A DNA stretch of 64,000 bases from Botryllus schlosseri. Lineage: Eukaryota. Below are positions 7,600 to 61,200 of this stretch, piece by piece. The notes beneath the pieces were generated by a model. The model saw nothing but the letters and a program-made list of their open reading frames with translations, made no database searches and was not told where the DNA came from. Positions within the stretch are counted from its first letter, which is position 1; every line of letters begins with the position of its first letter. Made by a program: the position numbers and the translations under genes. Location of the stretch: assembly GCA_051294905.1 (NCBI GenBank), contig CM119385.1, positions 22,258,001-22,322,000 on the forward strand, in the 5' to 3' direction.

Positions 7600-7714
7600 C
7601 AGGCCGTGTTATTTTTGGCATTTCAGGAGCCAGATGCCAAAACTGCCAAAAATAAAAATTTGAAAATGCCAAAAATAAGCAATTTTTGGCATATGCCAAA
7701 AATAACACGGCCTG
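7600..7714. mobile_element. Small palindromic MITE (CAGGCCGTGTTATTTTTGGCA TIR)
   Basis: Inverted ends; further copies at 58880-58992 and, partially, 57796-57885. Confidence 0.75.
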
Positions 7715-13541: not shown

Positions 13542-15815
13542 ATGAACACAGTATACCCTCAGCCAGGCTACGGTCAACCTCCGCCAGTTTACAACCCGTA
13601 TCCGCCGCCAGCGCCTGCACCAAGTAAGAATTTACAGCACCGTCGAATGCCTTTCTCTGAGAGTTCCTGTAATGAAGGAAATCTCAACTATGCCTGCTGG
13701 ATGGATAGAGCAAATGTAGCTTAGTCATCTCCACGCCATGTCCAGGTGCGATGCCGGGGTTATGAGCCATAAATTGGAAGTGTATAATAACGATCTTCCC
13801 TATAGTTACAATATTATTTTCAACGGAAAATCTAAATTAATTGTGTTGCCTATGATCTTCAATGGCGATAGAAGCGAGTTCATGCTCATAGCTAAATGAA
13901 TTCTTGATTTAGCATCGTCACATAAGCACATATAGTAGATTACAAACACCGAGAGGTTCAGGCTATAGGCAACGTTGAATACCAATTTCTGAAAATGAGG
14001 CTCAAATAGGATATCATTCATCTATTCTTGTGTGCTTGGAAAACAATGCAGCGGTCAATCAATTGGACACTGCTATATCCGTTATTTGAGATCGTTAACC
14101 ATAAATTTCATATTGAAAATAATATATACAGTATACACCCATCAGTCTACTGCGAGGAACAGTAGTATCACTGAAGCATTTTACAGTTCTGCAAGCGCCT
14201 GTTTCGACGTCAAACAACCAAACCATAGTCCAAGCACCTGCACCGGCAGCTCCCACAGTCATTATGGCTGGGACGGGGTCAGGGGGTAACTCAGGCACAG
14301 AAGCTCGATTCAGTGCTGGAAGCTGTACCAGATGCGGGTGGGTATAATCTGAGGTGGTCGCTAATGAAGAATACTTCTAGGTCTACTTGTAGTATATTTT
14401 GCCTAGTTGTACTACTTCCTTAAGTGGTTTTGTTTTAGATTATTTCTACTTGACAATTTTCTTTTTCCTAGGTGAAGCAAGGCCTGGAGTACTTATTGTT
14501 TCACTTACACTACTTTTTCTTGTTCTCCAGTAGAAATTGAGGACGGTACTTCTACTTCTACTTGAGTTCCAAGGATACTACGTTTACCCCTTATACGTAT
14601 AATATTATATATAAATCAATTTCAATCAAATAATTTGTGTATACTGAGATAAACCCAAGTATTTTCGGCTGCCACTCGTCAGGGTCCAGTCAGCCACTAG
14701 ACTATAGTAGAGAACTGAAAAGAAGATTGCTTATCATATTTCGTGATACGATTGTTGATATGCAATGTTCTTTTCGATTCTCTACCAGTCGCTGACGATT
14801 ATCCTCGACGAGTGTCAGCCGAAAATATTCTGGTCTATTTCAATACCAAGATAATGTTCAATTGTACATTGAAGTTCTGTACCTCCAAGAAGCTCTTTAG
14901 ATTAATTCCATAACATGTATCGTATGCCAGAGGTTTGAAATCTTGTCAAATCTTGTCAAATGCAGAGTTGGACAATTGGAATATTTTAACCTTTTCCAAA
15001 TTTGAATGGAATAGGATTATAGCTACGCTGTTTTTTTAAATTGGATTAGAATTAGAATAATTAAATTCGAAAAAATTTGGCGATTGAATAAATTTTCTAC
15101 TTAGAAAGAAATACTACAAAAATCAAGTTTAGTTCAAATCAAATCAGAGCTCATTCTCAGAAGCATGAGAATGGCAAATGCCTGAACACCAATCTTGGCC
15201 CGTTTCGTATTATACTAATCTGCTGTCGGATTATCTGTAAAACCTGAAATTAGATTCGAATTAAATTAGGAGCATATAGACTAGGGTTACCATACATCCT
15301 CTTTTAAGAGGATTTGTCCTCTTTTTTGACTTTGTTGAAAGTGTCCTCGGAGGACGCCCTTTTGTCCTCTTTTTTGAGATTTTGTCCTCATTTTTGAAAA
15401 TTTAGGCCATATTTAGAGCAAAATGCGATTGCTATGCCGTACATTAGCACAGAAGTGACGCTCCGGCTGGGCGAAAAGTAGTTGACCTTTTTTTTTGTCA
15501 ACCACCTGGCAATGTGGAGAGACAAATTTATTCAGAAGTGTATTACAGGCATTTCGCTCCAATGAGTCTACTCATACAACTAGAATTATCTGGTCGTCCA
15601 AGTGCGCTACACGGCTTGCTTTCCGGATAAACCTCCAATAGGTGCGATCTACCCAGGCTTATTTCTTTGCTTATTGCAGAGGCGAGATCGGGCCGGGGCC
15701 TTTCACGACAAACGGCATTCTGTGCGCTATCTGTTGCTTCCCGTGCGGCATTATATGCTGTCTCAAATGGAAGAACAAAAAGTGCAAATCGTGCGGGAGG
15801 GTATTCAAAAGCTGA
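13542..15815 (+). CDS. BRI3: BRI3/DUF2367-like protein, divergent paralog 2 (3 exons, 122 aa)
   Basis: Exons 13542-13623 (MNTVYPQPGYGQPPPVYNPYPPPAPAP), 14187-14337 (ILQAPVSTSNNQTIVQ...ARFSAGSCTRCG) and 15680-15815 (GEIGPGPFTTNGILCAICCFPCGIICCLKWKNKKCKSCGRVFKS*). Same intron phases as the other copies. Confidence 0.92.
14625..14900. repeat. Inverted pair of PLE terminal repeats with degenerate hammerhead cores (paralog 2, intron 2)
   Basis: Minus copy near 14653-14685 (CTGACGA gtggcagcc GAAA atac TT gggt) and plus copy near 14801-14834 (TCGACGA gtgtcagcc GAAA atat TC tggt). Confidence 0.75.
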
Positions 15816-18270: not shown

Positions 18271-21200
18271 ATGGCGAATCCGATTCCGAAGATGGACTGG
18301 GGATATGACCCCCTCTCCGAGGCTCTGGAAACGTTCCAGGATATGATAAATGTATACTTCGAGCTGAATGCCACTACGAATAACGCCAAGAAAGCCGCGA
18401 CCATAATGATGGGATTAGGCGATGAAGGCGCCAGAAGAGTACGACAATCGGGACTGTCCGCCGATGACAGGAAAGTGCCCGAACGAATATGGGAACTACT
18501 CAAACTGGAGATCGATACAAGTGACAGAGTGAGCTACAGAGTTCACAGATTAGAATTTGCGAAGCTATGTCAGTTGAAGGATGAGTCACTGACCGACTTT
18601 GTCCACAGAATCAGGAAAAAAGCTAAGAAATGTGATTTTGAAGACAATGAAGTAGAAGAGAGATTGGTGGAAAGAATCGTTGCATCCACCCCAATCGAGA
18701 AACTAAGAGTGAAGATCTTGAAGAAACAGAAAGGCTTCACGACTAAGGAAGCCCTGCAGTTGGGTTTGGAATTGGAAGCGCTACACACATACAACAGTAG
18801 CCATGATGCTCCCGAAGGAGCGACTTCAAGTATTGACGTAATACGCAAAGGAGATAGAGACAAGGCCTGCAACAAATGCGGACTATCACACGGTTGGAAA
18901 TGCCCAGCATTTAGATCTCGCTGTAACTATTGCGAAAACTATGGCCACTGGGAGGATTTCTGCGCAACGAAGAAGCGTGATAATGACGGCAATGCGAGAA
19001 ACAAGCAACACGAGAGCAACCAACGTAAGGCTCCGAGAAAGTCAAAGAAACATCAAAAGAGTCGACATACTCGACAATCAGAAGTAAAAGTGTATGACAC
19101 AGATAGCAGCAGTACCGACTGTCAAAACCCCGATAGTGATGATGACCAAACGAACACAATTTCATCGATCACCATTGGAGCTGTAAACGACTGCAAGAAC
19201 AAACAGGGTAAGGAAGCATACACCAGGATTAAATTCAAGCATATGAACCCAAAGTTGACTGGGAGCTGGAAGATCAAGGTCGACACTGGCGCTGGAGCAA
19301 ACACTCTTCCAAGACGACTTTTCAAGGAAATATTCGGGGAATTCAATCCGACCCCGTTACAACCAGAACCCAATGTTTTGCTAAAGAACTACTCCGGTTC
19401 GCGTATTGAGTGCTTTGGATCGATAAGTCTCCGCATCAAACGGCCACATGGCAAGAAGTATCGTAAGGATAAATTCTATGTGGTCGACACTGACGGTCCC
19501 GGCATCCTGGGCCTGCCCACCTGCGAGGCACTCAATCTTGTAACACTGAATCTGGACACATGCAGTGTCATGGACAAAGCTCCTCATACAGAGCAGACGC
19601 CGCCTAGAGTGGATACCATTGAGGACCTGAAAAAATGTTTTCCAGACTGCTTTGATGGCATTGGCAACTTTAAGGGTGAAGAAACTCTGCACATACACAC
19701 AAACGCAGAACCGTTCCAAGATGCTCCGCGGAAATGCCCAATCCATATTAAGGATCAAATCAAGCAAGAACTCGATAAGATGGAGACCCTGGGGATTATA
19801 CGGAAAGTCACCAAACATACTGACTGGTGCTCTTCGCTCACTGTGGCAATGAAGGCAGATAAGACACTGCGAGTCTGCCTTGATCCAAGACGCCTTAACG
19901 AAGCGCTGAAGAGAAATCCACACAAGATCCCTACAGTCGAAGAACTCCTACCAGAATTCAGCAAGTCAAAAGTATTTTCTAAGCTTGATGCTAAATCTGG
20001 ATACTGGAGTGTGAAGTTATCACCAGCCTCACAAGAACTGACGACATTTCGAAGCCCCCTTGGCGACAAATACTGTTTCTTGCGCCTACCATTCGGGCTC
20101 AATGTATCACAGGATATATTCCAAGCCAAAATGGATGCTATCATTGCCCAATGCGAAGGTTGTGTTGGCATATCTGATGATATTGTGATACACGGAAAAG
20201 ACAATGACGAACATGACAGGCGACTGAGACACTTCTTGTACACTGCGAAAAAAGAGGGTCTCATGCTCAATTCCAAGAAATGTTGCATCAAGACCAACTG
20301 CATCTCGTTCTTCGGAAGACTCCTGACTGATCATGGTGTAAAACCTGACCCGACAAAAGTCAGTGACATAACCGGCATGCCGACACCACGAAACAAGCAG
20401 GACCTACAAACATTCCTAGGCATGGCACAATTCCTAGCCTGTCACATTCCAAACTTTTCGAAAACAAGTGCGTCATTGAGAGACCTCTGCAAAAAGGATA
20501 TAACATTTCTCTGGAATGAAGATCACCAGCACGCCTTTGAGCAGATCAAGAAAGCAATCACTGACAGCCACATCCTGCAATACTACGATCCTACTTCACC
20601 GGTCACTCTGGAAGTGGATGCATCGCTAAAAGGATTGGGAAGCTCGCTGGTTCAAGGTGAGCGAGTGGTCGCTTTCGCAAGCAAAGCTCTGACGCCAAGT
20701 GAGTCAAATTACAGTAATATTGAGCGAGAGTGCCTAGCAATTCTGTATGGCATAAAAAGATTTCACCATTATCTGTTTGGCCGCCACTTCAAGGTCATTA
20801 CCGACCACAAACCGCTTGAAATGATATTCAAAAAACCGATATACTGTGCACCCCCTCGCTTACAGAGAATAATATCGCAAACACTAGGCTACGACTTTGT
20901 GGTATCCTATAGACCTGGACCCGGCATGGTGCTCGCTGATGCACTCTCGCGTCTACCAAACCAAAAAGACGAGACTGCAACTCTCGACCACAGTGCAAAC
21001 ACAGTACCTATCAGCTGCATAAGTGATATGCCCATTGACTTCTTGTGTTTTTCAAGTGTGAAGCAATCGCAGATACAACAGCAAACTGCCACAGATCCGA
21101 TCTTGAAAACCGTTGCCGAAACCATACACATTGGTTGGCCCGACACGATTCAAGAGGTACCTTCGGACATACGAGAGTACTGGAACTACAGGGATGAGCT

Positions 21201-22338
21201 AGCCCTTGAAAACGGCATAATATTCAAAGGAAATCAGACAGTCGTTCCAACATGTCTGCGATCAGATATATTACAACAACTGCATGAGAGTCACCAGGGC
21301 ATCGAGAAGACAAGAAGACTTGCCAGGGAATATGTATATTGGCCTGGAATCAACAACGACATTTCAACACTCTGCAAGTCATGCGAATCATGCCAGGAGC
21401 TCCTACCAGAACAAACAAAACAACCGATGAAGATGCATGAACGCCCACCAAGACCTTGGGTGAAACTCGGAACTGACATTTTCGAGATCAAAGGTAGGAA
21501 CTTTCTGATCATTTCAGACTACTTTTCCAGATACCCCATCGTGCAAGAATTACGATCGATCACATCGAAATCCGTCGTCAACAAAACGAAAAGGATCCTG
21601 AGCTTATTTGGAAGCGTCAAAGAAATAGTCAGTGACGGTGGACCTTGTTACCTCAGCCAATACGACAAATTCTGTGATGAATGGGGCATCACGCACACAA
21701 CCAGCTCACCCCGACACAGCAGATCCAATGGCTTCATCGAAAGACAGATAGGATATCTCAAACCTATCATCAAGAAATGTATCAAGACTGGAGGAGATAT
21801 CCAGGCAGCGTTACTCAATGTCCGGGCAACACCTCTCGACAATGTGCTGCCCAGCCCTGCTGAACTGCTATTTGGCCGCCGCATCACAACGAAGCTGCCT
21901 ACTCATGATATCATCTCAACACCTCAGGTATACAGAGACAAGGTTGACCGGATAGTGGAAAACCAGAAGAAATACGCCGATCAGCACACTAAAGAACTTC
22001 CACTACTGCACCATGGACAAAATGTACGGGTGCTGGACAAACAAGATAAAGTTTGGAAGCCCGCGACCATATTATCGCGTGAAAGTGACCGAAGATACAC
22101 GGTACAAATGGCAACAGGACGACAGCTTGTCAGAAATCGGGCCTACTTGAGAAATGTGGAAACATGTGCCACGGAGCAAACCTTGACAAACGTTGTGGAC
22201 ACGTCAAGCACATCCATACCGATAGAACAAGAAGACAGCACACCATCCTCAAGCGCCTTGAACACAAGCATACAGACTACCAGATCCGGCCGAGCTGTAC
22301 GCAAACCGAAACGCTACATCGACGATGACGAAAACTGA
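18271..22338 (+). CDS. Gag-Pol polyprotein (zinc knuckles, protease, RT, RNase H, integrase), 1355 aa
   Basis: Cys/His knuckles CNKCGLSH..CNYCENYGHWEDFC; protease VDTGA; RT KLDAKSGYW, RLPFGL, ISDD; RNase H EVDAS, IEREC, TDHKPL; integrase H..H..C..C and GTD/SDG/IER. Domain order is Gypsy-type. Confidence 0.97.
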   Translation: MANPIPKMDWGYDPLSEALETFQDMINVYFELNATTNNAKKAATIMMGLGDEGARRVRQSGLSADDRKVPERIWELLKLEIDTSDRVSYRVHRLEFAKLCQLKDESLTDFVHRIRKKAKKCDFEDNEVEERLVERIVASTPIEKLRVKILKKQKGFTTKEALQLGLELEALHTYNSSHDAPEGATSSIDVIRKGDRDKACNKCGLSHGWKCPAFRSRCNYCENYGHWEDFCATKKRDNDGNARNKQHESNQRKAPRKSKKHQKSRHTRQSEVKVYDTDSSSTDCQNPDSDDDQTNTISSITIGAVNDCKNKQGKEAYTRIKFKHMNPKLTGSWKIKVDTGAGANTLPRRLFKEIFGEFNPTPLQPEPNVLLKNYSGSRIECFGSISLRIKRPHGKKYRKDKFYVVDTDGPGILGLPTCEALNLVTLNLDTCSVMDKAPHTEQTPPRVDTIEDLKKCFPDCFDGIGNFKGEETLHIHTNAEPFQDAPRKCPIHIKDQIKQELDKMETLGIIRKVTKHTDWCSSLTVAMKADKTLRVCLDPRRLNEALKRNPHKIPTVEELLPEFSKSKVFSKLDAKSGYWSVKLSPASQELTTFRSPLGDKYCFLRLPFGLNVSQDIFQAKMDAIIAQCEGCVGISDDIVIHGKDNDEHDRRLRHFLYTAKKEGLMLNSKKCCIKTNCISFFGRLLTDHGVKPDPTKVSDITGMPTPRNKQDLQTFLGMAQFLACHIPNFSKTSASLRDLCKKDITFLWNEDHQHAFEQIKKAITDSHILQYYDPTSPVTLEVDASLKGLGSSLVQGERVVAFASKALTPSESNYSNIERECLAILYGIKRFHHYLFGRHFKVITDHKPLEMIFKKPIYCAPPRLQRIISQTLGYDFVVSYRPGPGMVLADALSRLPNQKDETATLDHSANTVPISCISDMPIDFLCFSSVKQSQIQQQTATDPILKTVAETIHIGWPDTIQEVPSDIREYWNYRDELALENGIIFKGNQTVVPTCLRSDILQQLHESHQGIEKTRRLAREYVYWPGINNDISTLCKSCESCQELLPEQTKQPMKMHERPPRPWVKLGTDIFEIKGRNFLIISDYFSRYPIVQELRSITSKSVVNKTKRILSLFGSVKEIVSDGGPCYLSQYDKFCDEWGITHTTSSPRHSRSNGFIERQIGYLKPIIKKCIKTGGDIQAALLNVRATPLDNVLPSPAELLFGRRITTKLPTHDIISTPQVYRDKVDRIVENQKKYADQHTKELPLLHHGQNVRVLDKQDKVWKPATILSRESDRRYTVQMATGRQLVRNRAYLRNVETCATEQTLTNVVDTSSTSIPIEQEDSTPSSSALNTSIQTTRSGRAVRKPKRYIDDDEN

Positions 22339-46354: not shown

Positions 46355-46500
46355 ATGCAATGTTCTTTTCAATTCTCTACTATAGTTGCTTAGTATTACC
46401 CCTGGCGAGTGTCAGCCGAAAATATTTGGGTTCATTTCAATATGAATATACAATTGAATTGTGTATTAAAGTTCTGTACCTCCAAGAAGCTCTTAAGAAT
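46355..46500 (+). repeat. PLE terminal repeat copy, core CTGGCGA
   Basis: accc CTGGCGA gtgtcagcc GAAA atat TT gggt at about 46398-46431, followed by aaagttctgtacctccaagaa. Confidence 0.75.
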
Positions 46501-46623
46501 TATTCTTGTTTCGAATTTCCCTGGGATAGGATATTTCTGCATGCACGTCTTAGCCATCAGTTTTGTTGCATTTATTATTGCATTATCAATATTAGCATTG
46601 CAAATATGTATCACAGGGACTCG

Positions 46624-49600
46624 ATGGCACTGATATTTTTCGCTACGTGTTTTCTGAGCATGTCGTATGCACAGATTATGACAGAGATCATACCAGTTGA
46701 ATTACCACGGTATGGAAGCAGGAGTCGAAACGCAGGAGTCGAATATTCAATGGCGATGTGGCTATTTCTCATTCAGGAAAATCAAATTTTAAGCGGTAAG
46801 GCAATAGACACTGATTTCTGATATTAGGATATTAGTCAGTGTTTAGCTCAGCAATCCGCAAGTATAAAAGTCAATCGGTATTCGCCGGTAAATTCTTTCT
46901 ATTGTATGACATGCGAATAGGACAGAACAATATTTATATTGGAATAAAATAAATATTTTAGGCTGACACTCGTCAGGGGTAATCGTCGCAACTTGTAGGA
47001 AATTGAGGAGTACATTGTATATCAACAATCGCATCTCCAATGTTCTTTTCAATTCTCACCTACAGTTGCTGATGAATATCTATGACCCTTGACGAGTGTC
47101 AGCCGAAAAGACTCGGGTCTATTTCATGCAATTGTATATTAAAGTTCTGTACCTCCAAGAGTTTCTAGGGATAGGACTGCATGTGACTGGTTTAGAAGCA
47201 CTGCTATCGAATCCCCTGAAACTGATGCATTATACCTATCATATGTTATTGTATATTCAGAGGAGGTGAAGCAGTTGAAAGAATCTCAGCAAAGCTCGTT
47301 GGACGCAATGAATAAAGAGGTGTCCGGACTTGCGTTGAGTGTCATTGATACCATATTTTCGTCGCCAAGTATAGGTATATTATTCTATATTGGTTTTTGA
47401 TACCTGGAAGCAAATCCGGGATAGAGTAAGGTCTAAACTTTTGTCACACTTTCTCTAATGTATTTAATTTTCAACAACAGAACAAATAACTCATAGGAGA
47501 GCTCGATTTTTGTTAGTTCGCCGATTTTCGCTATACTTCTTCCTATACTAGTTATGTAGTTAATTTTTGAGTCACGGTATTTATTGAGGTTTTTAGTTTT
47601 GATTGTAGTCAAGATATTCCTGGTCTATATGACTCGAATTTGATGAAACGGCGTGTCTGTGTTTATCTTATTAGATTTCACTCAATTGCGTGTAGATGAA
47701 CAAATAAAGATTNNNNNNNNNNNNNNNNNNNNNNNNNNNNNNNNNNNNNNNNNNNNNNNNNNNNNNNNNNNNNNNNNNNNNNNNNNNNNNNNNNNNNNNN
47801 NNNNNNNNNNNNNNNNNNNNNNNNNNNNNNNNNNNNNNNNNNNNNNNNNNNNNNNNNNNNNNNNNNNNNNNNNNNNNNNNNNNNNNNNNNNNNNNNNNNN
47901 NNNNNNNNNNNNNNNNNNNNNNNNNNNNNNNNNNNNNNNNNNNNNNNNNNNNNNNNNNNNNNNNNNNNNNNNNNNNNNNNNNNNNNNNNNNNNNNNNNNN
48001 NNNNNNNNNNNNNNNNNNNNNNNNNNNNNNNNNNNNNNNNNNNNNNNNNNNNNNNNNNNNNNNNNNNNNNNNNNNNNNNNNNNNNNNNNNNNNNNNNNNN
48101 NNNNNNNNNNNNNNNNNNNNNNNNNNNNNNNNNNNNNNNNNNNNNNNNNNNNNNNNNNNNNNNNNNNNNNNNNNNNNNNNNNNNNNNNNNNNNNNNNNNN
48201 NNNNNNNNNNNNNNNNNNNNNNNNNNNNNNNNNNNNNNNNNNCTACCAACCCGAATGCACGCGAACATAACAGATAGCCTACATTTCAATTAGAATGCTG
48301 TTATCGTAGGGCGGTTTGTGCTAAAATACAACAGCCTCTATTTCTAATCCTATAGTTCCGATGACACACCTGTCATGAAAGATTAAAGTTTAAAGCAATG
48401 GTTTTTAACCTTTTATGACCCGGGAAACCCTTGCGTTAATCTGCAAGCCGTCAGGGGTTTGTATTTCGAACCCCAACTTCCCCTGCGTACGCTGCTATCA
48501 CACCATTATTACAGTCACAATTCGACTACCGATCGGGCCTAATTGCCTGCAACGAATGTGGGCCAAAACATGCGTGTTCTCCTTAATCATATGTAGGCCT
48601 ATTAGTAGCCTATAGTTTGTGTGTTGACATCCGGTAAAACCACTGATACTGGCTTACGAATAGTTTTAAGTTATCATGGCAAATAACTTTACACACAAGT
48701 GTTTACGAGGCACAGTAATGTCCCGATTACGTGCAGGTGGCCTCGACGGAAAGATACAGGAGAACATCGAACGGATTTTTGAACTGTCTCAGACCGATCA
48801 GGCTTTCCAAACAGCTCTCGACTCGCTTCAGCAGACCGTCAGTGCGATTCAACAAAGCTTCAACGCCCAATCAAAATGTATGTTGCGAATTCACAGCAAT
48901 TATATTCTGTATAGTATGTATCTTGTGCGTGTAATTGTGCTCTTAGAACTCACTGCTGCTATTTTGAAATGTTTTTGTGAATAATGAGATACAAAATTAT
49001 ATTTAAAGAGTTTCTTGGAGGTACAGAACTTTAATAAACAATTAAATAACATATTCATATTGAAATAAACCTAAATATTTTCGGCTGACACAAGGGTAAT
49101 CTTCACTAATTAAAATACTATTGGAAAGAGCATTGTATAAGGTATGTATACGATTATTGATATACAATGTTCCTTCAAATTCTCTACTAGTTGCTGACGT
49201 AGGCTATATACCCCAGACGAGTTTATTTCAATATGAAAATGTTATATATATACAAAATGATATCATATTCTGATCTTAACCCATCAATCTAATGCTTGTG
49301 CGAAGTGAAAGCCGTCTTAAAGCATAACCACATCAGTAAATATAGTGCGAGTAGGCGGAACCTACTTGAGTACTGCAAAAAAACCTGCGTTAGTGACCAC
49401 CTCGGTGGATTCCAGAGTCATTTATTGAACATATCGCGACTATTTACGTCAGCACAAATTCGTCATGATCCCGACCGATATCGGACAAAAACTATTACTA
49501 ATTCCCTCGATGATATTATATTTATCCGATATTCAAAAGATATGGCAGCTAGCTTAAAGCGCATTACCAAAACTCAAGAGTATTTGTTCAAACTGCTTTA

Positions 49601-55277: not shown

Positions 55278-58200
55278 ATGTTGTTCGTAATTCATCTTTG
55301 CTCTCTCATGGCTGCGGTGGTGATGGCAGAAGGTGACGTGATGTTGCCGTATCATCCGCAAAACACGGCATTTCATCCCCAAAGGCGCGTAACATCAGCG
55401 AAAAGTTTGGTAACAATGCTTCTTCTCAAAGAAAACAAGAAACTTGCAGGTATAGAGTGTATTTTGATTGATTTCTGTAAAACAACACAATATAGGGGAG
55501 ATGTGGTACCGATGGATCACTGGGACCGAAAATACTTTGAAAATTCTCAATGATAATTCCATGATTACACTCCGTTAACTTGTCTTCAGTTGCATGCTGC
55601 CAAAATCTTTCCTCACATACAAAAAAATTCGACGTGCGCGAGCTATGGGGTCTCTCACAGATGTTTTTTGTTTTGGGGGGTGTAAACTAAATTTAAATCG
55701 ACATATACATTTTTCTTTGTAACCTTCAACAGGAACAAACCAGCAATCATTTTTATTGTGAAGTGTAGGGCTTGTATCAGGCTATATAATGGCACCTATA
55801 ATTTTTTTCGGTGCCTTCCTTTAGTGGAATTTTTTCGATTCATGTATAAAATTCGCAGGGTGGGGACCGATGATACAATAGCCAAATCAAGCAAAATAAT
55901 CAAGCATACTAATCATGAAACAAGTGAAACATGCCTACGTACAGAAAATCTTTATGTAATAATTGCATATGACGTTTTATCGCTATAACGAGGTATTTGG
56001 ATGTCACACTGTCGATTTTCGGGCAATATGTATGTACCCTCAAATTTATAAGCTCGAGCCTAAATCGAAACGTGATTTTATGACAACATTTGAGTAAATA
56101 TTCATTCTATTTTTTGACGGTTGCGACCGAACATTCTTCTTTGGCTTGCTGTAGCTTAGATTATAATATTGAGCAAGAAAAGTTGTCATGTTTTAGTTTT
56201 TTAGGGTATATGTGTCATAGGTCCCCGGGTCGTGTGCCACTGGACCCACCGGGTGGGGACCGATGATACGCTCGAGCATCAAATTTTAAACGTCCTTAAA
56301 TATTTTTTGAAAAGACGGATATTCATGTATATGTGCGCGATAGGTAGAGCTTGTATCAAAGTGCTGAGCCAGCAAAAGATCTGATGTTTTCGGCTGAACA
56401 TTTTGGGGCCAGCGATCATTTTCCAATTTTTGATCCATCGGTACCACATCTCCCCTACTATCGTTTAGCGGATGACATCGGACCTAAAATATGTCGGATG
56501 TAAAGCTGTAGACCTCAGACTCGTACAAACTGTACGCTGGATATTCCAAATGCGCAACTAGATCTAGAACTATAATCACTTTTTAAACCGCGCAACTAGA
56601 ACTAGAACAAACGTTCTTTAAAAAAAACCAATTAACTAACTAAAATACAACTATCAATTCCGAAGCAATTCATTAATTTTTAGTTAATCGGAATCGACTC
56701 CCAAAACCAAACCCGTGGATATGTCAATGCCAGTAGTAAATTTATGACTCGGAGCTATAGCAATTGCTACTACAACATCACAAAACAGAACACCGGTATC
56801 ATGACTCACGACGACGACGACACCTGTTTTCTATAGTTGATCGGCAACTAAATGTTTTCCAAAATGCGCAACTAGAACTAGAACTGCTCACTCTGCAACA
56901 AAATAGATTGGTAATTTGTACAAGTCTGTAGACCTATACCCTTTACGCTTCCGTAACATTTGTACACATTCTCACCACGTATTCGTCTACAGATAAACTG
57001 GAACAAGTGAAACTTGATAGCGAACTATCCAACCTCGCCCTGCAAACCAAATTAGAAGCCCTCGAGATGAAGATAGAAACTCGGCCCAGATGTAAGCCGA
57101 TTTCAGATGAAACAGCATATGTACGGTAAAGTGAGTCTGTTTATCACAGCCACCCGATGCTATATGGGAATGAAGTTCGGGGATATTCCGGACTCCGCGA
57201 TAACCGCTTCGTCTCAGGTAGACGTGAAGCATTCGCCGGCAAGAGCGAGGCTTGATACTGAAATGACTGGAGATAACTTCAGAGGCGGTTGGGCAGCTTC
57301 TACACCTGGTGGGTATTTGATGTGCTGTACAGAATTCATCGTAAGGCATACATTAATAGGAGAGTTTTCGATTCCTTATACGTAACGATGGAATAGTAGG
57401 CTATATCACATTGAAATGAAACCCGAATATTTTCGGCTGACACTCGTCAGGGGTAATCGTCAGCAACTAGTATAGAATAAGAAAGAAGATTGTATATCAA
57501 CAATTGTATCACAAAATATGACGTCACCAGCATGAAACTTCGAATGAGAGAGCGTTCTGTGCGCTATTCCCAGGTGGTACACGAACTCTTTCTGTTGACA
57601 GAGTTTCGGTTGGTGTATTTTGCTAAAAGTCGTCTCCAAGGCACACAAGTGGAAGTGTGAACGGCCCCTCCCAATAACGCGAAATTTGTCGTCTCTATAA
57701 TTATTCGCACAAATCGGATTATCCAACAGATGTTTGCCGATTGCAGAATTAATTATACGTAACGCTGCAGTGAATCTAACATTGTAATTAGGGCCAGGCC
57801 GTAATATTTTTGGCATATGCCAAAACTGCCAAAAATAACTTATTTTTGGCATTTTTCGATTTTTATTTTTGGAAGTTTTGGCATCGTCCTCTAAATAGAT
57901 AGTTTCAGCCTCGAATTAGTCACAAAAACGCTTTATTTGGGCTAGTTTGTCAAAAGACACCACAAAATGTGCAGCATCCACGTATAATCAGTGCCAACAA
58001 ACAATAAGAAGAAAAAACCTCACGATTTCATGGGTTAATAATATCAAACGAAACCACAAAATGTGCAGTATATCCATCGGAATCGGTGCCAATATAAGCA
58101 AAAAGAAAAAGAAAAGCCTAACAAACACGCTCAACAGCTGATTGTTACAGCTGTTGAAATGACTTAACTCGTTTGCACTGTAACAATGCTTCCAAACTCA

Positions 58201-61200
58201 AATCAGCTAAGTTTCTCCTAAATTCATTTCTCGCGCAGCGAATCTGGGAAATATCGGCTTCAACAGTAGCCGTTGAGGGAAAGAATGTTGCCAGTCATCC
58301 ACAAAAGGTTTTCAGAGCTTCAAAATCTTTGGAGGGCCGAACCGGCTCCCATGCATCATGAAAAGAGATCACTTCGCCAGTGCCATCGATATCATCGCGG
58401 AAAGAATTTTCTTCCCGATCCTTTTCCAGGAGTTTCCTGTGTTGTCTCTCAACACATTCTATTTAGTAGCCCGACTATCATTTCTCCTTCAGTCTACCGA
58501 TATATTTTCGGAGGACTTTTGTCACTTCAGGTGGCTTTAATATTACCAACTCGCATGGAAGAGTCCTGGGAAAGTTAGCTTGTTTAAAAACATTGACGCA
58601 ACAAGACTGTCTGGTAAAACAAGACTATGCAGCTCAGAAATAGCCAGACAGTTTGTTGCGTCACAATGTTCAACTCGATCACAATGCAAAAATCGTGGTT
58701 GTTTTTGGGGGTTCCAGTTCCATGAGCAGAATATAATTTGTATTTTAATAATCAGTACTGCGGCAGCTTCTCATTGATACCCGTTTTATCATATTATGAA
58801 ACCTGCCTTTCACAAACGCTCATCTTGCTTGTAACGCGGTCCTGTTAACACAACACCATAAACGAAATACACTCTTTGGCAGGCCGTGTCATTTTTGGCA
58901 TACGCCAAAATTTGCTTATTTTTGGCATCTTCAAATTTTTATTTTTGGCAGTTTTGGCATGGCTCCTGAAATGCCAAAAATAACACGGCCTGGGCATGGG
59001 ACAATGAGAACGGGAATTCGAATTGATAGTGATGATTCGCGTCGCGTATAGGGAGACATGGTTTTTTCGGGTACGGAAAGTATATAAGCCCCTTTCCACC
59101 ACAAGAGTTAATTTATCAACGAGAGTGATAGTTTCATTTCTTTTTCCCACCTAGGAAGCCTTGAAACCTCGATTGGTCGTATCACAGCATACAAAACATG
59201 TAATACAAAGCTACTCGCGTCAGTGAAAATGACATATCTGTCTGATCAACCCACAGCATTGCCACAAGTAAAATAGGCATGGCCGAAAATATATCAAGTG
59301 TTCTGTGATGTAGTGCACAATTAGCAATATTTTCTTTGATCTGCGCGTCGTAAAAATGCATCTTTGAACTTTCCACATACATCATACTCATATGACGACG
59401 TCTTAACGTGTGATATTCAACCTAACTCGAAGCCTAAAACTAGATTCGGAATCGAAACACTCACGTTCTCGATTTTGCCATGACCCAATATTCATACGCT
59501 GTACTTTGGTTTCGGACGAATGGATCCAGGTTGACTTGGGAAGCAGTCTGCCGATAGCCGGCGTCATCCTACAAGGGCGGTCAGACATGAATGAGTGGGT
59601 GAAAACGTACAAGGTCCAGTGCGACTCGGTGACGATTCAAGAATACGGAGTTGACAAGGTATATTGATACACCACGTTCTTTCCAATTCTCTACCAGTTG
59701 CTAACGATGACCCCTGTCGAGTGTCAATCGGAAATATTCCGATTTACTTCAATACCAATATATTATTTAATTGTATATCATATATATAAGTTATGTACTT
59801 TCCAAGAGTCTCTTCGTATTGGCAATGTTTGTGGAAATCTAGCGACCCTCCGATGTGATTTGTTTTGCCCTGCCACGTACTTCGAAATAGGCCTAACAAA
59901 TGCGGCTATAAAGTCAACATTGAATCACGCAGGTATTCATTTAGTAATTACTAGGGATGGTGTGAACGCGAGGTTCACGTTCGCGTTCTGTGTGTGAACC
60001 TCAGAAATTTAGAGGTTCACGTTCACAAACGAACCTTGGTAGGTTCTGCACTGTGAACCTTTTTCATATATTGTAATTTTCCACGTTATTTGTTAAAATT
60101 TTTGGTTAAAATTCATTGCATTTCAACTGCGGGCCCCTGTATGCATGGCACTGACAGCATAAAAATCAACACTAAACGAGCATGCAACATTGACAATCTC
60201 AAAAATTTTAGTTGATTTGTTACAAAAGTTTGCTCGAAACATCCAGTTTTCCGTTTTTAAATATTTAGTGACTCTCTGCTTTGATCTTGACCCGTAATCA
60301 CACAATATCAAGAGCGAAATACGCTACATGTAGGTATAGTCATGTCAGCGAATGATGCTTATTCAACCAATCAATGAAATTCATATCGGAATACATCGTT
60401 GTCAAATATAAAAAAATCTAGCAGGCGTATGTGGAAACCATCTTGATTTGATATGTGTTTTGTATCATAAAAAACAAATCGGTGTGATTGGGGTGTTGGA
60501 CACTCCTATATAACTTCTTAATGGGATGATATAGGCAGCAAGTATCGAAACCCTTTTTACTTTCTATTCAATATCAATGTAGCAGTACTAAGACGCCGAG
60601 TACATATTCCGGTCTGGCCTATAGACCGTTTAAGGCGTAAGCTTATATTCCCTTGCAACTCTTCGTCGGAAGATATTGATTGGGTTAATTATGTCATTTG
60701 ATTGCTCCAGTTGATATATTTGGCGACCTTTAAAAAGTCAGTATGTACTTCACTATTGTGGCATAATGAGGCCCCAGTCGTTACTAGATATCGTATTGTA
60801 CATTAATATATCACTTCACTGAAATGTAGGCTCGGAATTACCAATATGACGTCATGTGACGTCATGAGGTTCACGTTCGTGTTCACACAGAACCTTTCCA
60901 AAAGGTTCGCGTTCACACGAACCAGAACCTTTCAGAGGTTCACACCATCCCTAGTAATTACTGCCGACGTGTTGTGCAAGTTGCTCGACTGACCTATAGT
61001 AGGGCGGAGCATGGACCGGAGCCGTATTGGATATCTGGCCGGACTTTTTCATTTTGGCAGGAGCCAGATCGGATACAGATCAGTACAATTTCTGATACGG
61101 CCGGAGCTGAATCAGTACTTTTTGGATACGGCCAGAATCTTAATTGATAAGCATGACTTTTGTAACAAAATAACTACCAACCAACCACACGCAAGTAACC

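Follow-up and report, generated by a model that had tools for sequence, protein, structure and literature searches.

Here we describe a hammerhead ribozyme motif of unusual build in the genome of Botryllus schlosseri, where it lies in the remnant of a Penelope-like element (PLE). The window analysed is a stretch of 64,000 nucleotides (assembly GCA_051294905.1, contig CM119385.1, positions 22,258,001 to 22,322,000), and the positions given below count from its first letter. On its minus strand, behind the last codons of a GIY-YIG endonuclease, stands a sequence that is very likely a hammerhead of PLE origin in which a pseudoknot takes over from stem II. As far as can be judged from the sequences, this pseudoknot, formed by two six-base boxes termed X and X', stands in for the usual stem II hairpin. 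The link between PLEs and minimal hammerheads of the dimer type has been known since 2014, when hammerheads in PLE terminal repeats were published (Cervera and de la Peña, 2014; PMC4209133), and the novelty implied by the original prediction, an earlier reading of this stretch made from the letters alone, is therefore not justified; the new part is the covarying pseudoknot, which is a variant and not a new class.

Read from 57454 to 57421, the minus strand gives ACCC-CUGACGA-G-UGUCAGC-C-GAAA-AUAUU-C-GGGU. It contains, at 57450-57425, a complete hammerhead core (C3, U4, G5, A6, N7, G8 and A9; G12, A13 and A14; A15.1-U16.1; and an H17 that is not G), with a predicted cut after C57425, at 57425|57424. 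The letters and coordinates of the original prediction, which had every core position in place, were exact on re-reading, and its 4-bp stem I, its AAUAUU palindrome and its cut are all in the sequence as it had them. The palindrome leaves no loop for stem III, and pairing is possible only between two molecules. Furthermore, the ribozyme sequence of the window copy is identical to the consensus of its family.

The comparison that carries the identification was built on Joint Genome Institute (JGI) metagenome contigs scanned with an alignment of the GIY-YIG tail, which gave 80 loci, and on eight further loci from look-ups of divergent protein matches, whose GIY-YIG tails are 41-62% identical. 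The same motif is found downstream of the open reading frame (ORF) in about ten lineages, usually 130-200 nt past the matched part, with extremes of about 115 and 305. Covariation was assessed on 13 lineage representatives; a larger alignment of 76 matches (A5) was left out because most of its rows are decayed copies of one family. Among the representatives, position 17 is C, U or A and never G, and the pair G10.1-C11.1 is retained in all 13, as G-C in 12 and G-U in one. Two loci, L003 and L085, carry a swap in the core, U3 with A8, matching variation published for PLE hammerheads (PMC4209133). The variants of stem I stay complementary throughout (ACCC/GGGU, UCCC/GGGA, GCUA/UAGU, GGUUU/AAACC, GCCA/UGGC and CAUACU/AGUAUG), with compensatory changes in all four pairs and 92% of cells paired; the covariation in stem I that the original prediction had wanted to see across copies is thus present across lineages. 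Stem III palindromes (AAUAUU, AAGCUU, AACGUU and AAAGCUUU) measure 6-8 nt, and their central pair, alternating between GC, CG and UA, is the one stem III pair that covaries. Taking all helices together, the paired cells amount to 96.2%, whereas shuffles give 71.6% (none of 500 attains the observed value) and controls with slid partners 25-42%, and compensatory changes affect 11 of the 14 pairs, including the whole of stem I and of the pseudoknot, a result that is the same when the lineage group called family 4 is included. Moreover, a covariance model (R2) from which the window's own family had been left out scores the window site at 50.3 bits (E about 1e-10), its top match in the window.

It is in stem II that the motif leaves the classical scheme. 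In every lineage nine nucleotides separate A9 from G12, namely a G, one base, six bases and a C, and within this interval no hairpin is possible beyond G10.1-C11.1, so that a helix II hairpin is missing. The six bases (57441-57436 in the window) are complementary to an upstream box at 57464-57459. Of the stem II in the original prediction, the G-C pair therefore stands, whereas the passive 7-nt loop does not, six of its seven bases pairing with that box. The start of the box lies 14-17 nt upstream of C3, the figures being given as 13-14 nt in all lineages but one, and the two strands change in concert: GCUGAC/GUCAGC in the window, UCUGAC/GUCAGA, UCCGAC/GUCGGA, GGCUAG/CUAGCC, CUGGUC/GACCAG, UCUAGC/GCUAGA and UCCAGC/GCUGGA elsewhere. 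Compensatory changes are present in all six pairs of X:X', with 96% of cells paired (shuffles reach 71-72%, slid controls 21-42%), and RNAalifold returns the helix, unprompted, as the consensus structure. Two other arrangements, the first CUGACGA (57463-57457) as the core and X:X' as a directly connected stem II, were rejected, the connectivity fitting in neither.

These elements suggest how the molecule might be assembled. With X:X' stacked on G10.1-C11.1, helix II would reach 7 bp and take its 5' strand from the upstream flank; following the rules for pseudoknots, the deep groove would be bridged by the one base left unpaired, in the manner of loop 1 in H-type pseudoknots. The active dimer, cut after C57425, would arise when the stem III palindromes of two RNAs, or of two tandem copies, pair with each other. 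Whether the motif actually cleaves as a dimer we regard as evenly balanced.

The element that hosts the motif is a short PLE insertion. A phmmer search of the translation of 57463-57795 (minus) against 1.8 billion proteins gave 897 matches, 179 of them below 1e-10. The best match, P0001 (236 aa, 85% identity), has a GIY-YIG motif just upstream of the matched part, and in P0108 (841 aa) an RVT_1 domain occupies 365-546 and the window peptide aligns near the C-terminus, at 772-833. This succession, reverse transcriptase (RT) and then GIY-YIG, is the canonical PLE order, of which the window copy retains just the last ~64 codons; the adjoining Penelope-like GIY-YIG peptide of the original prediction is in this way borne out. 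A Pfam search with the 130-aa ORF listed for the window gave zero matches. The contig coding for P0001 (L001) has the complete GIY-YIG ORF, a TGA stop and then the untranslated region (UTR); it is 89.3% identical to the window over 354 nt, and the two agree in all 46 nt of the ribozyme, counted from the X box through the 3' strand of stem I. At 57558-57556, the position of the original stop, L001 reads TGA and the window AGA; the 130-aa ORF is therefore a read-through artefact, and the motif begins 101 nt past the original stop of the GIY-YIG remnant. Homology to L001 begins at ~57754, RNA and contig depth ends at ~57757, and the 12-bp repeat CGTTACGTATAA has only its two flanking occurrences in the window. 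The start of the homology, together with this target-site duplication (TSD), defines a 365-bp insertion truncated at its 5' end, and not a gene. The canonical signature of PLE insertions is found in full, with 5' truncation, TSD, inverted truncated neighbours and an optional tail. The window copy itself is a dead relic, without ORF and without partner.

Next to this remnant, about 30 bp from its 5' TSD, lies an AT-rich palindromic hairpin repeat built on GCCAAAA motifs and resembling a miniature inverted-repeat transposable element (MITE), at 57795-57890, with further copies at 7631-7714 and 58880-58993. It is the source of the false ATG of the 130-aa ORF, and against RNA families it gave solely weak chance matches to microRNA precursors.

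Around the motif, a segment of ~120 bp is repeated in the window at 14.6-14.8, 46.35-46.45, 46.95-47.13, 49.05-49.2 and 59.66-59.75 kb. A covariance model recovers eight copies of the motif, of which that at 57419-57466 (minus) alone is intact, the others carrying substitutions or deletions in the core (Table 1). Since three of the sites are inverted pairs, head to head, the repeat resembles a foldback MITE; the original prediction had held that the ribozyme family would explain this repeat, and indeed it is the PLE 3' UTR bearing the hammerhead motif. As signatures of PLEs, earlier work describes neighbours that are inverted and 5'-truncated, and a tail extension of tens of bp that may be present or absent (PMC8557442; PMC11167929). 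A dispersed repeat of the B. schlosseri genome is now firmly annotated as PLE tails. Two forms of the 3' end exist in the window, a short one reaching ~36 nt past the cut (the copy at 57388-57752; L001 is similar) and a long one reaching ~80 nt, which holds the motif AAGTTCTGTACC, conserved across lineages.

PLE lineages that have otherwise diverged share a motif conserved in its DNA sequence, AA(A/G)TTCTGTACC(A/T)CCAA, located 40-85 nt past the cut. It is found in the window at 46457-46512, 14859-14908 and 48988-49040 and downstream of the ribozyme in L003, L063, L084, L085, L087 and L090, and lies within the optional tail that published work ties to endonuclease recognition and RT initiation. 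In L008, L077, L087, L009 and L079 the ribozyme linked to the ORF has a second copy 0.5-1.2 kb upstream of it, on the other strand, the typical inverted truncated neighbour of PLEs, in other organisms too.

As regards transcription, bulk RNA-seq of the same species has a depth of 400-500 over the ribozyme and of about 6 over the ORF remnant, and over 57419-57466 the expressed copies have no majority difference from the window copy. Most of the reads covering the ribozyme probably come from embedded dead copies. A drop in depth at 57419-57421 was considered as a trace of cleavage and rejected, because the window copy diverges there from the consensus and the loose ends of the reads continue with the consensus tail. 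In 10 of 13 sequences (nine lineages) a TATA-like box is found 30-33 nt before the X box, and in 12 of 13 the distance is 30-42 nt. This near-constant spacing suggests that transcripts driven by the pseudo-long terminal repeat (pLTR) start at the ribozyme, and the predicted start is consistent with the pLTR promoters already published (PMC6765202). Cleavage would shorten such a transcript by a capped leader of roughly 40 nt, and the constant distance from TATA to ribozyme makes trimming of the 5' end of the element's own transcript directly testable. Promoter-like elements were noted at 57491-57496 and 57519-57526 (minus), the TATA-like box is present also in L003, L016, L085, L004 and others, and upstream of the X box there are CCAAT boxes in other lineages and a TGACGTCA palindrome in the window's family.

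Several observations weigh against this reading of the motif and have to be set beside the comparison. No Rfam hammerhead family was matched, at the gathering score or at E up to 10, by the 64-kb, 1-kb or 86-nt sequence. The nested hammerhead fold is calculated at +0.1 kcal/mol, versus -12.2 kcal/mol for competing local hairpins, and the AAUAUU duplex, all A-U, is very weak (about -0.2 kcal/mol in isolation). RNA-seq reads cross 57425/57424 into the consensus tail, with no pile-up of ends reported in what is an insensitive assay, and all genomic copies keep both flanks of the cut site, which means that their template RNAs were uncleaved there. Among the lineages, L084 has no recognisable X partner, the largest subfamily of metagenome Ga0210059 combines U3 with G8 (UUGAAGA), and in family 4 (L004, L063 and L037) an additional A separates A14 from the stem III palindrome. 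Two of these groups deserve a description of their own. The UUGAAGA subfamily comprises L013, L029-L031, L044 and about 20 more Ga0210059 loci, its related lineages have U3-A8, and it looks like either an intermediate of covariation in the core or a crippled but prolific subfamily. In family 4 the palindrome has 8-10 nt, and an insertion at the junction of A14 and stem III, a core position, is unusual for hammerheads.

With Rfam silent and the loose pattern CUGANGA...GAAA...UH so common (49 matches in the window versus ~19 expected, hence uninformative by itself), the case for a hammerhead rests on context and comparison. We read the silence of Rfam as a limit of its models, the stem II hairpin being absent, and not as counter-evidence. 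These same two facts are what favours a chance consensus match inside an ordinary repeat, a reading with next to no probability: about ten lineages have the motif in the corresponding position behind homologous ORFs, its stems covary, and the covariation, with and without family 4, and the score of model R2, trained independently of the window's family, refute it. A different objection grants conservation and denies cleavage, the hammerhead-like RNA being kept as a recognition or initiation element for the PLE RT and endonuclease or for pLTR transcription, or as a dispensable, hitch-hiking ribozyme. To the reads that traverse the cut site and the inserted copies, all holding uncleaved ribozyme sequence, it can add that PLE hammerheads are nearly inactive in vitro (PMC4209133), that in Anolis catalytic mutants of a PLE insert unaffected and there, likewise, no RNA-seq ends fall at the cut (PMC11167929), and that Naiad PLEs thrive without hammerheads (PMC8557442). 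Nevertheless, the invariant positions are precisely the catalytic ones (U4, G5, A6, A9, G12-A15.1 and U16.1, with position 17 never G), and the change from C3-G8 to U3-A8 is compensatory, a pattern that protein binding would not obviously require; we consider such a role unlikely.

Two further readings concern the pseudoknot and the copies themselves. X:X' could be an OFF switch, in which the upstream GCUGAC competes with a hairpin between core and loop (CUGAC with GUCAG) and regulates folding from outside the active structure. In the window's family both pairings are indeed possible, X:X' at -7.4 and core:X' at -5.4 kcal/mol. However, the core:X' hairpin is unconserved (73.8% paired versus 75.3% in shuffles, with zero compensatory changes) and cannot form in the lineages whose X' is CUAGCC, GCUAGA or GACCAG, and since no lineage offers an alternative stem II, X:X' is left as the sole candidate for helix II; a switch is thus very unlikely. 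Somewhat less improbable than either this or a role without cleavage, though still on the unlikely side, is that the short copies of about 150-175 bp are a non-autonomous derivative of the pLTR, similar to retrozymes or short interspersed nuclear elements and mobilised in trans, with 57388-57752 as the rarer parent bearing the ORF. The 3' UTR part exceeds the ORF remnant 20- to 80-fold in RNA and contig depth, the 5' ends of the window copies cluster 45-70 nt upstream of the core, and a 2026 preprint derives animal retrozymes from PLE pLTRs (10.64898/2026.07.22.740005). Against such a derivative, non-LTR retrozymes are recognised by direct repeats of 150-400 bp in tandem, each containing a type I hammerhead, and the window has none, its copies standing alone or in inverted orientation; PLEs commonly show heavy 5' truncation and truncated neighbours in inverse orientation (PMC8557442); and the short copies are without any sequence foreign to the PLE UTR and tail.

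The reading we prefer, a PLE hammerhead whose stem II is a pseudoknot, can be placed among known systems. With the minimal type I hammerheads of PLEs (PMC4209133) it shares its place in the pLTR or 3' UTR after the RT-GIY-YIG ORF, an open helix I of 4-5 bp, G10.1-C11.1, a loopless palindromic helix III implying dimers, U3-A8 variants, and many decayed solo copies with opposite-strand pairs 100-700 bp apart. The published consensus, unlike ours, has a hairpin helix II of 6-8 bp and an unpaired base between A9 and G10.1, whereas here there are 9 nt from A9 to G12, no hairpin, a partner of ~6 bp upstream of helix I and an unpaired base after G10.1; the 1+6 pairs would equal the published length of helix II only if the pseudoknot stacks on G10.1-C11.1. 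Pseudoknots clamping stems I and II have been described in about 40% of hammerheads and, in the examples tested, a helix of 4-6 bp is required for fast cleavage (Perreault et al., 2011; PMC3088659). Those ribozymes, such as the human C10orf118 type I, have a similar Watson-Crick pairing of loop II beside stem I, but keep a normal stem II hairpin to which the pseudoknot adds a tertiary clamp, while in the window the hairpin is reduced to one pair and the pseudoknot is the sole sizeable helix on that side. In the SGC, CSG and GCS types of non-circularly permuted hammerheads (Eckert et al., 2023; PMC10085705), core helices are also formed as pseudoknots with the catalytic positions unchanged; they permute three intact blocks, whereas the window motif keeps the classic C-G-S order of type I, with nothing displaced but the 5' strand of helix II, which lies upstream of helix I. 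Finally, animal non-LTR retrozymes (PMC7229834; 10.64898/2026.07.22.740005) are likewise short, non-coding, transcribed repeats with type I hammerheads and linked to PLEs, but they form tandem arrays with canonical loop-loop contacts and circular RNAs, and the window has dispersed or inverted copies without evidence of circles.

Altogether, in about ten PLE lineages a helix X:X' with strong backing from covariation stands in the place of stem II, and it is invisible to Rfam. The descriptor of 2014 demands a helix II stem and would probably miss the variant, so that surveys may undercount such ribozymes. More tentatively, and on balance doubtfully, there could be a widespread PLE branch with an undescribed hammerhead topology, in which the ribozyme stands at the very start of the pLTR transcript and its cleavage decaps the element RNA. 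By undescribed we mean a helix II without hairpin whose 5' strand has moved upstream of helix I, relative to a surveyed literature that excludes Lunse et al. (2017), where it has possibly been described. If true, one more natural rearrangement of the hammerhead would join the circular and block permutations, and the failure of descriptor and Rfam searches to pick up these copies would have its explanation.

Table 1. Features of the PLE insertion, of its hammerhead motif and of the decayed copies in the window
Feature	Position	Strand	Basis or remark
TATA-like box	57491-57496	-	32 nt upstream of X box; putative pLTR promoter element
X box GCUGAC, 5' strand of pseudoknot helix, partner of "loop II"	57459-57464	-	compensatory changes in 6/6 pairs
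Spacer GAUU, X box to stem I	57455-57458	-	G and U near-invariant across lineages (alignment A4, columns 9-11)
Stem I, 5' strand ACCC	57451-57454	-	4/4 pairs covary across lineages
Catalytic box C3-A9, CUGACGA	57444-57450	-	U4, G5, A6 and A9 invariant in 13 lineage representatives
G10.1 (57443), unpaired U (57442), X' GUCAGC (57441-57436), C11.1 (57435)	57435-57443	-	X' pairs with X
G12 A13 A14 (57434-57432) and loopless palindrome AAUAUU (57431-57426), stem III	57426-57434	-	sequence; palindromes of the lineages
C17 (57425), predicted cut 57425/57424, stem I 3' strand GGGU (57424-57421)	57421-57425	-	sequence
5'-truncated PLE insertion: last ~64 codons of GIY-YIG endonuclease and 3' UTR, short form without tail extension	57388-57752	-	365 bp; homology to L001
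TSD, 5' copy CGTTACGTATAA	57753-57764	-	perfect 12-bp direct repeat
TSD, 3' copy CGTTACGTATAA	57376-57387	-	perfect 12-bp direct repeat
Remnant of C-terminal half of PLE GIY-YIG endonuclease	57559-57752	-	phmmer; stop from comparison with L001
Decayed copy, A6 to G, X box mutated, long tail to about 46505-46512	46386-46433	+	44.7 bits
Decayed pair, head to head: G12 to U; C3 to U with X lost	46945-46992; 47072-47120	-; +	covariance model
Decayed pair, head to head	14650-14688; 14789-14837	-; +	covariance model
Decayed pair, head to head: 5-nt core deletion; motif deleted	49067-49109; about 49145-49199	-; +	
Decayed single copy, A6 to U, A13 to G	59698-59745	+	covariance model

The window also contains remains of other elements. 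At 58148-58420 (minus) a broken frame ending in LEALLQCKRVKSFQQL resembles, by eye, the C-terminal region of a hAT-type transposase, neither of its pieces having a match in Pfam. At 18271-22338 (plus) there is an uninterrupted gag-pol ORF of 1355 aa, with RVT_1, RNase H, integrase zinc-binding and rve domains, belonging to a long terminal repeat retrotransposon of the Ty3/gypsy type, which may be a young element.

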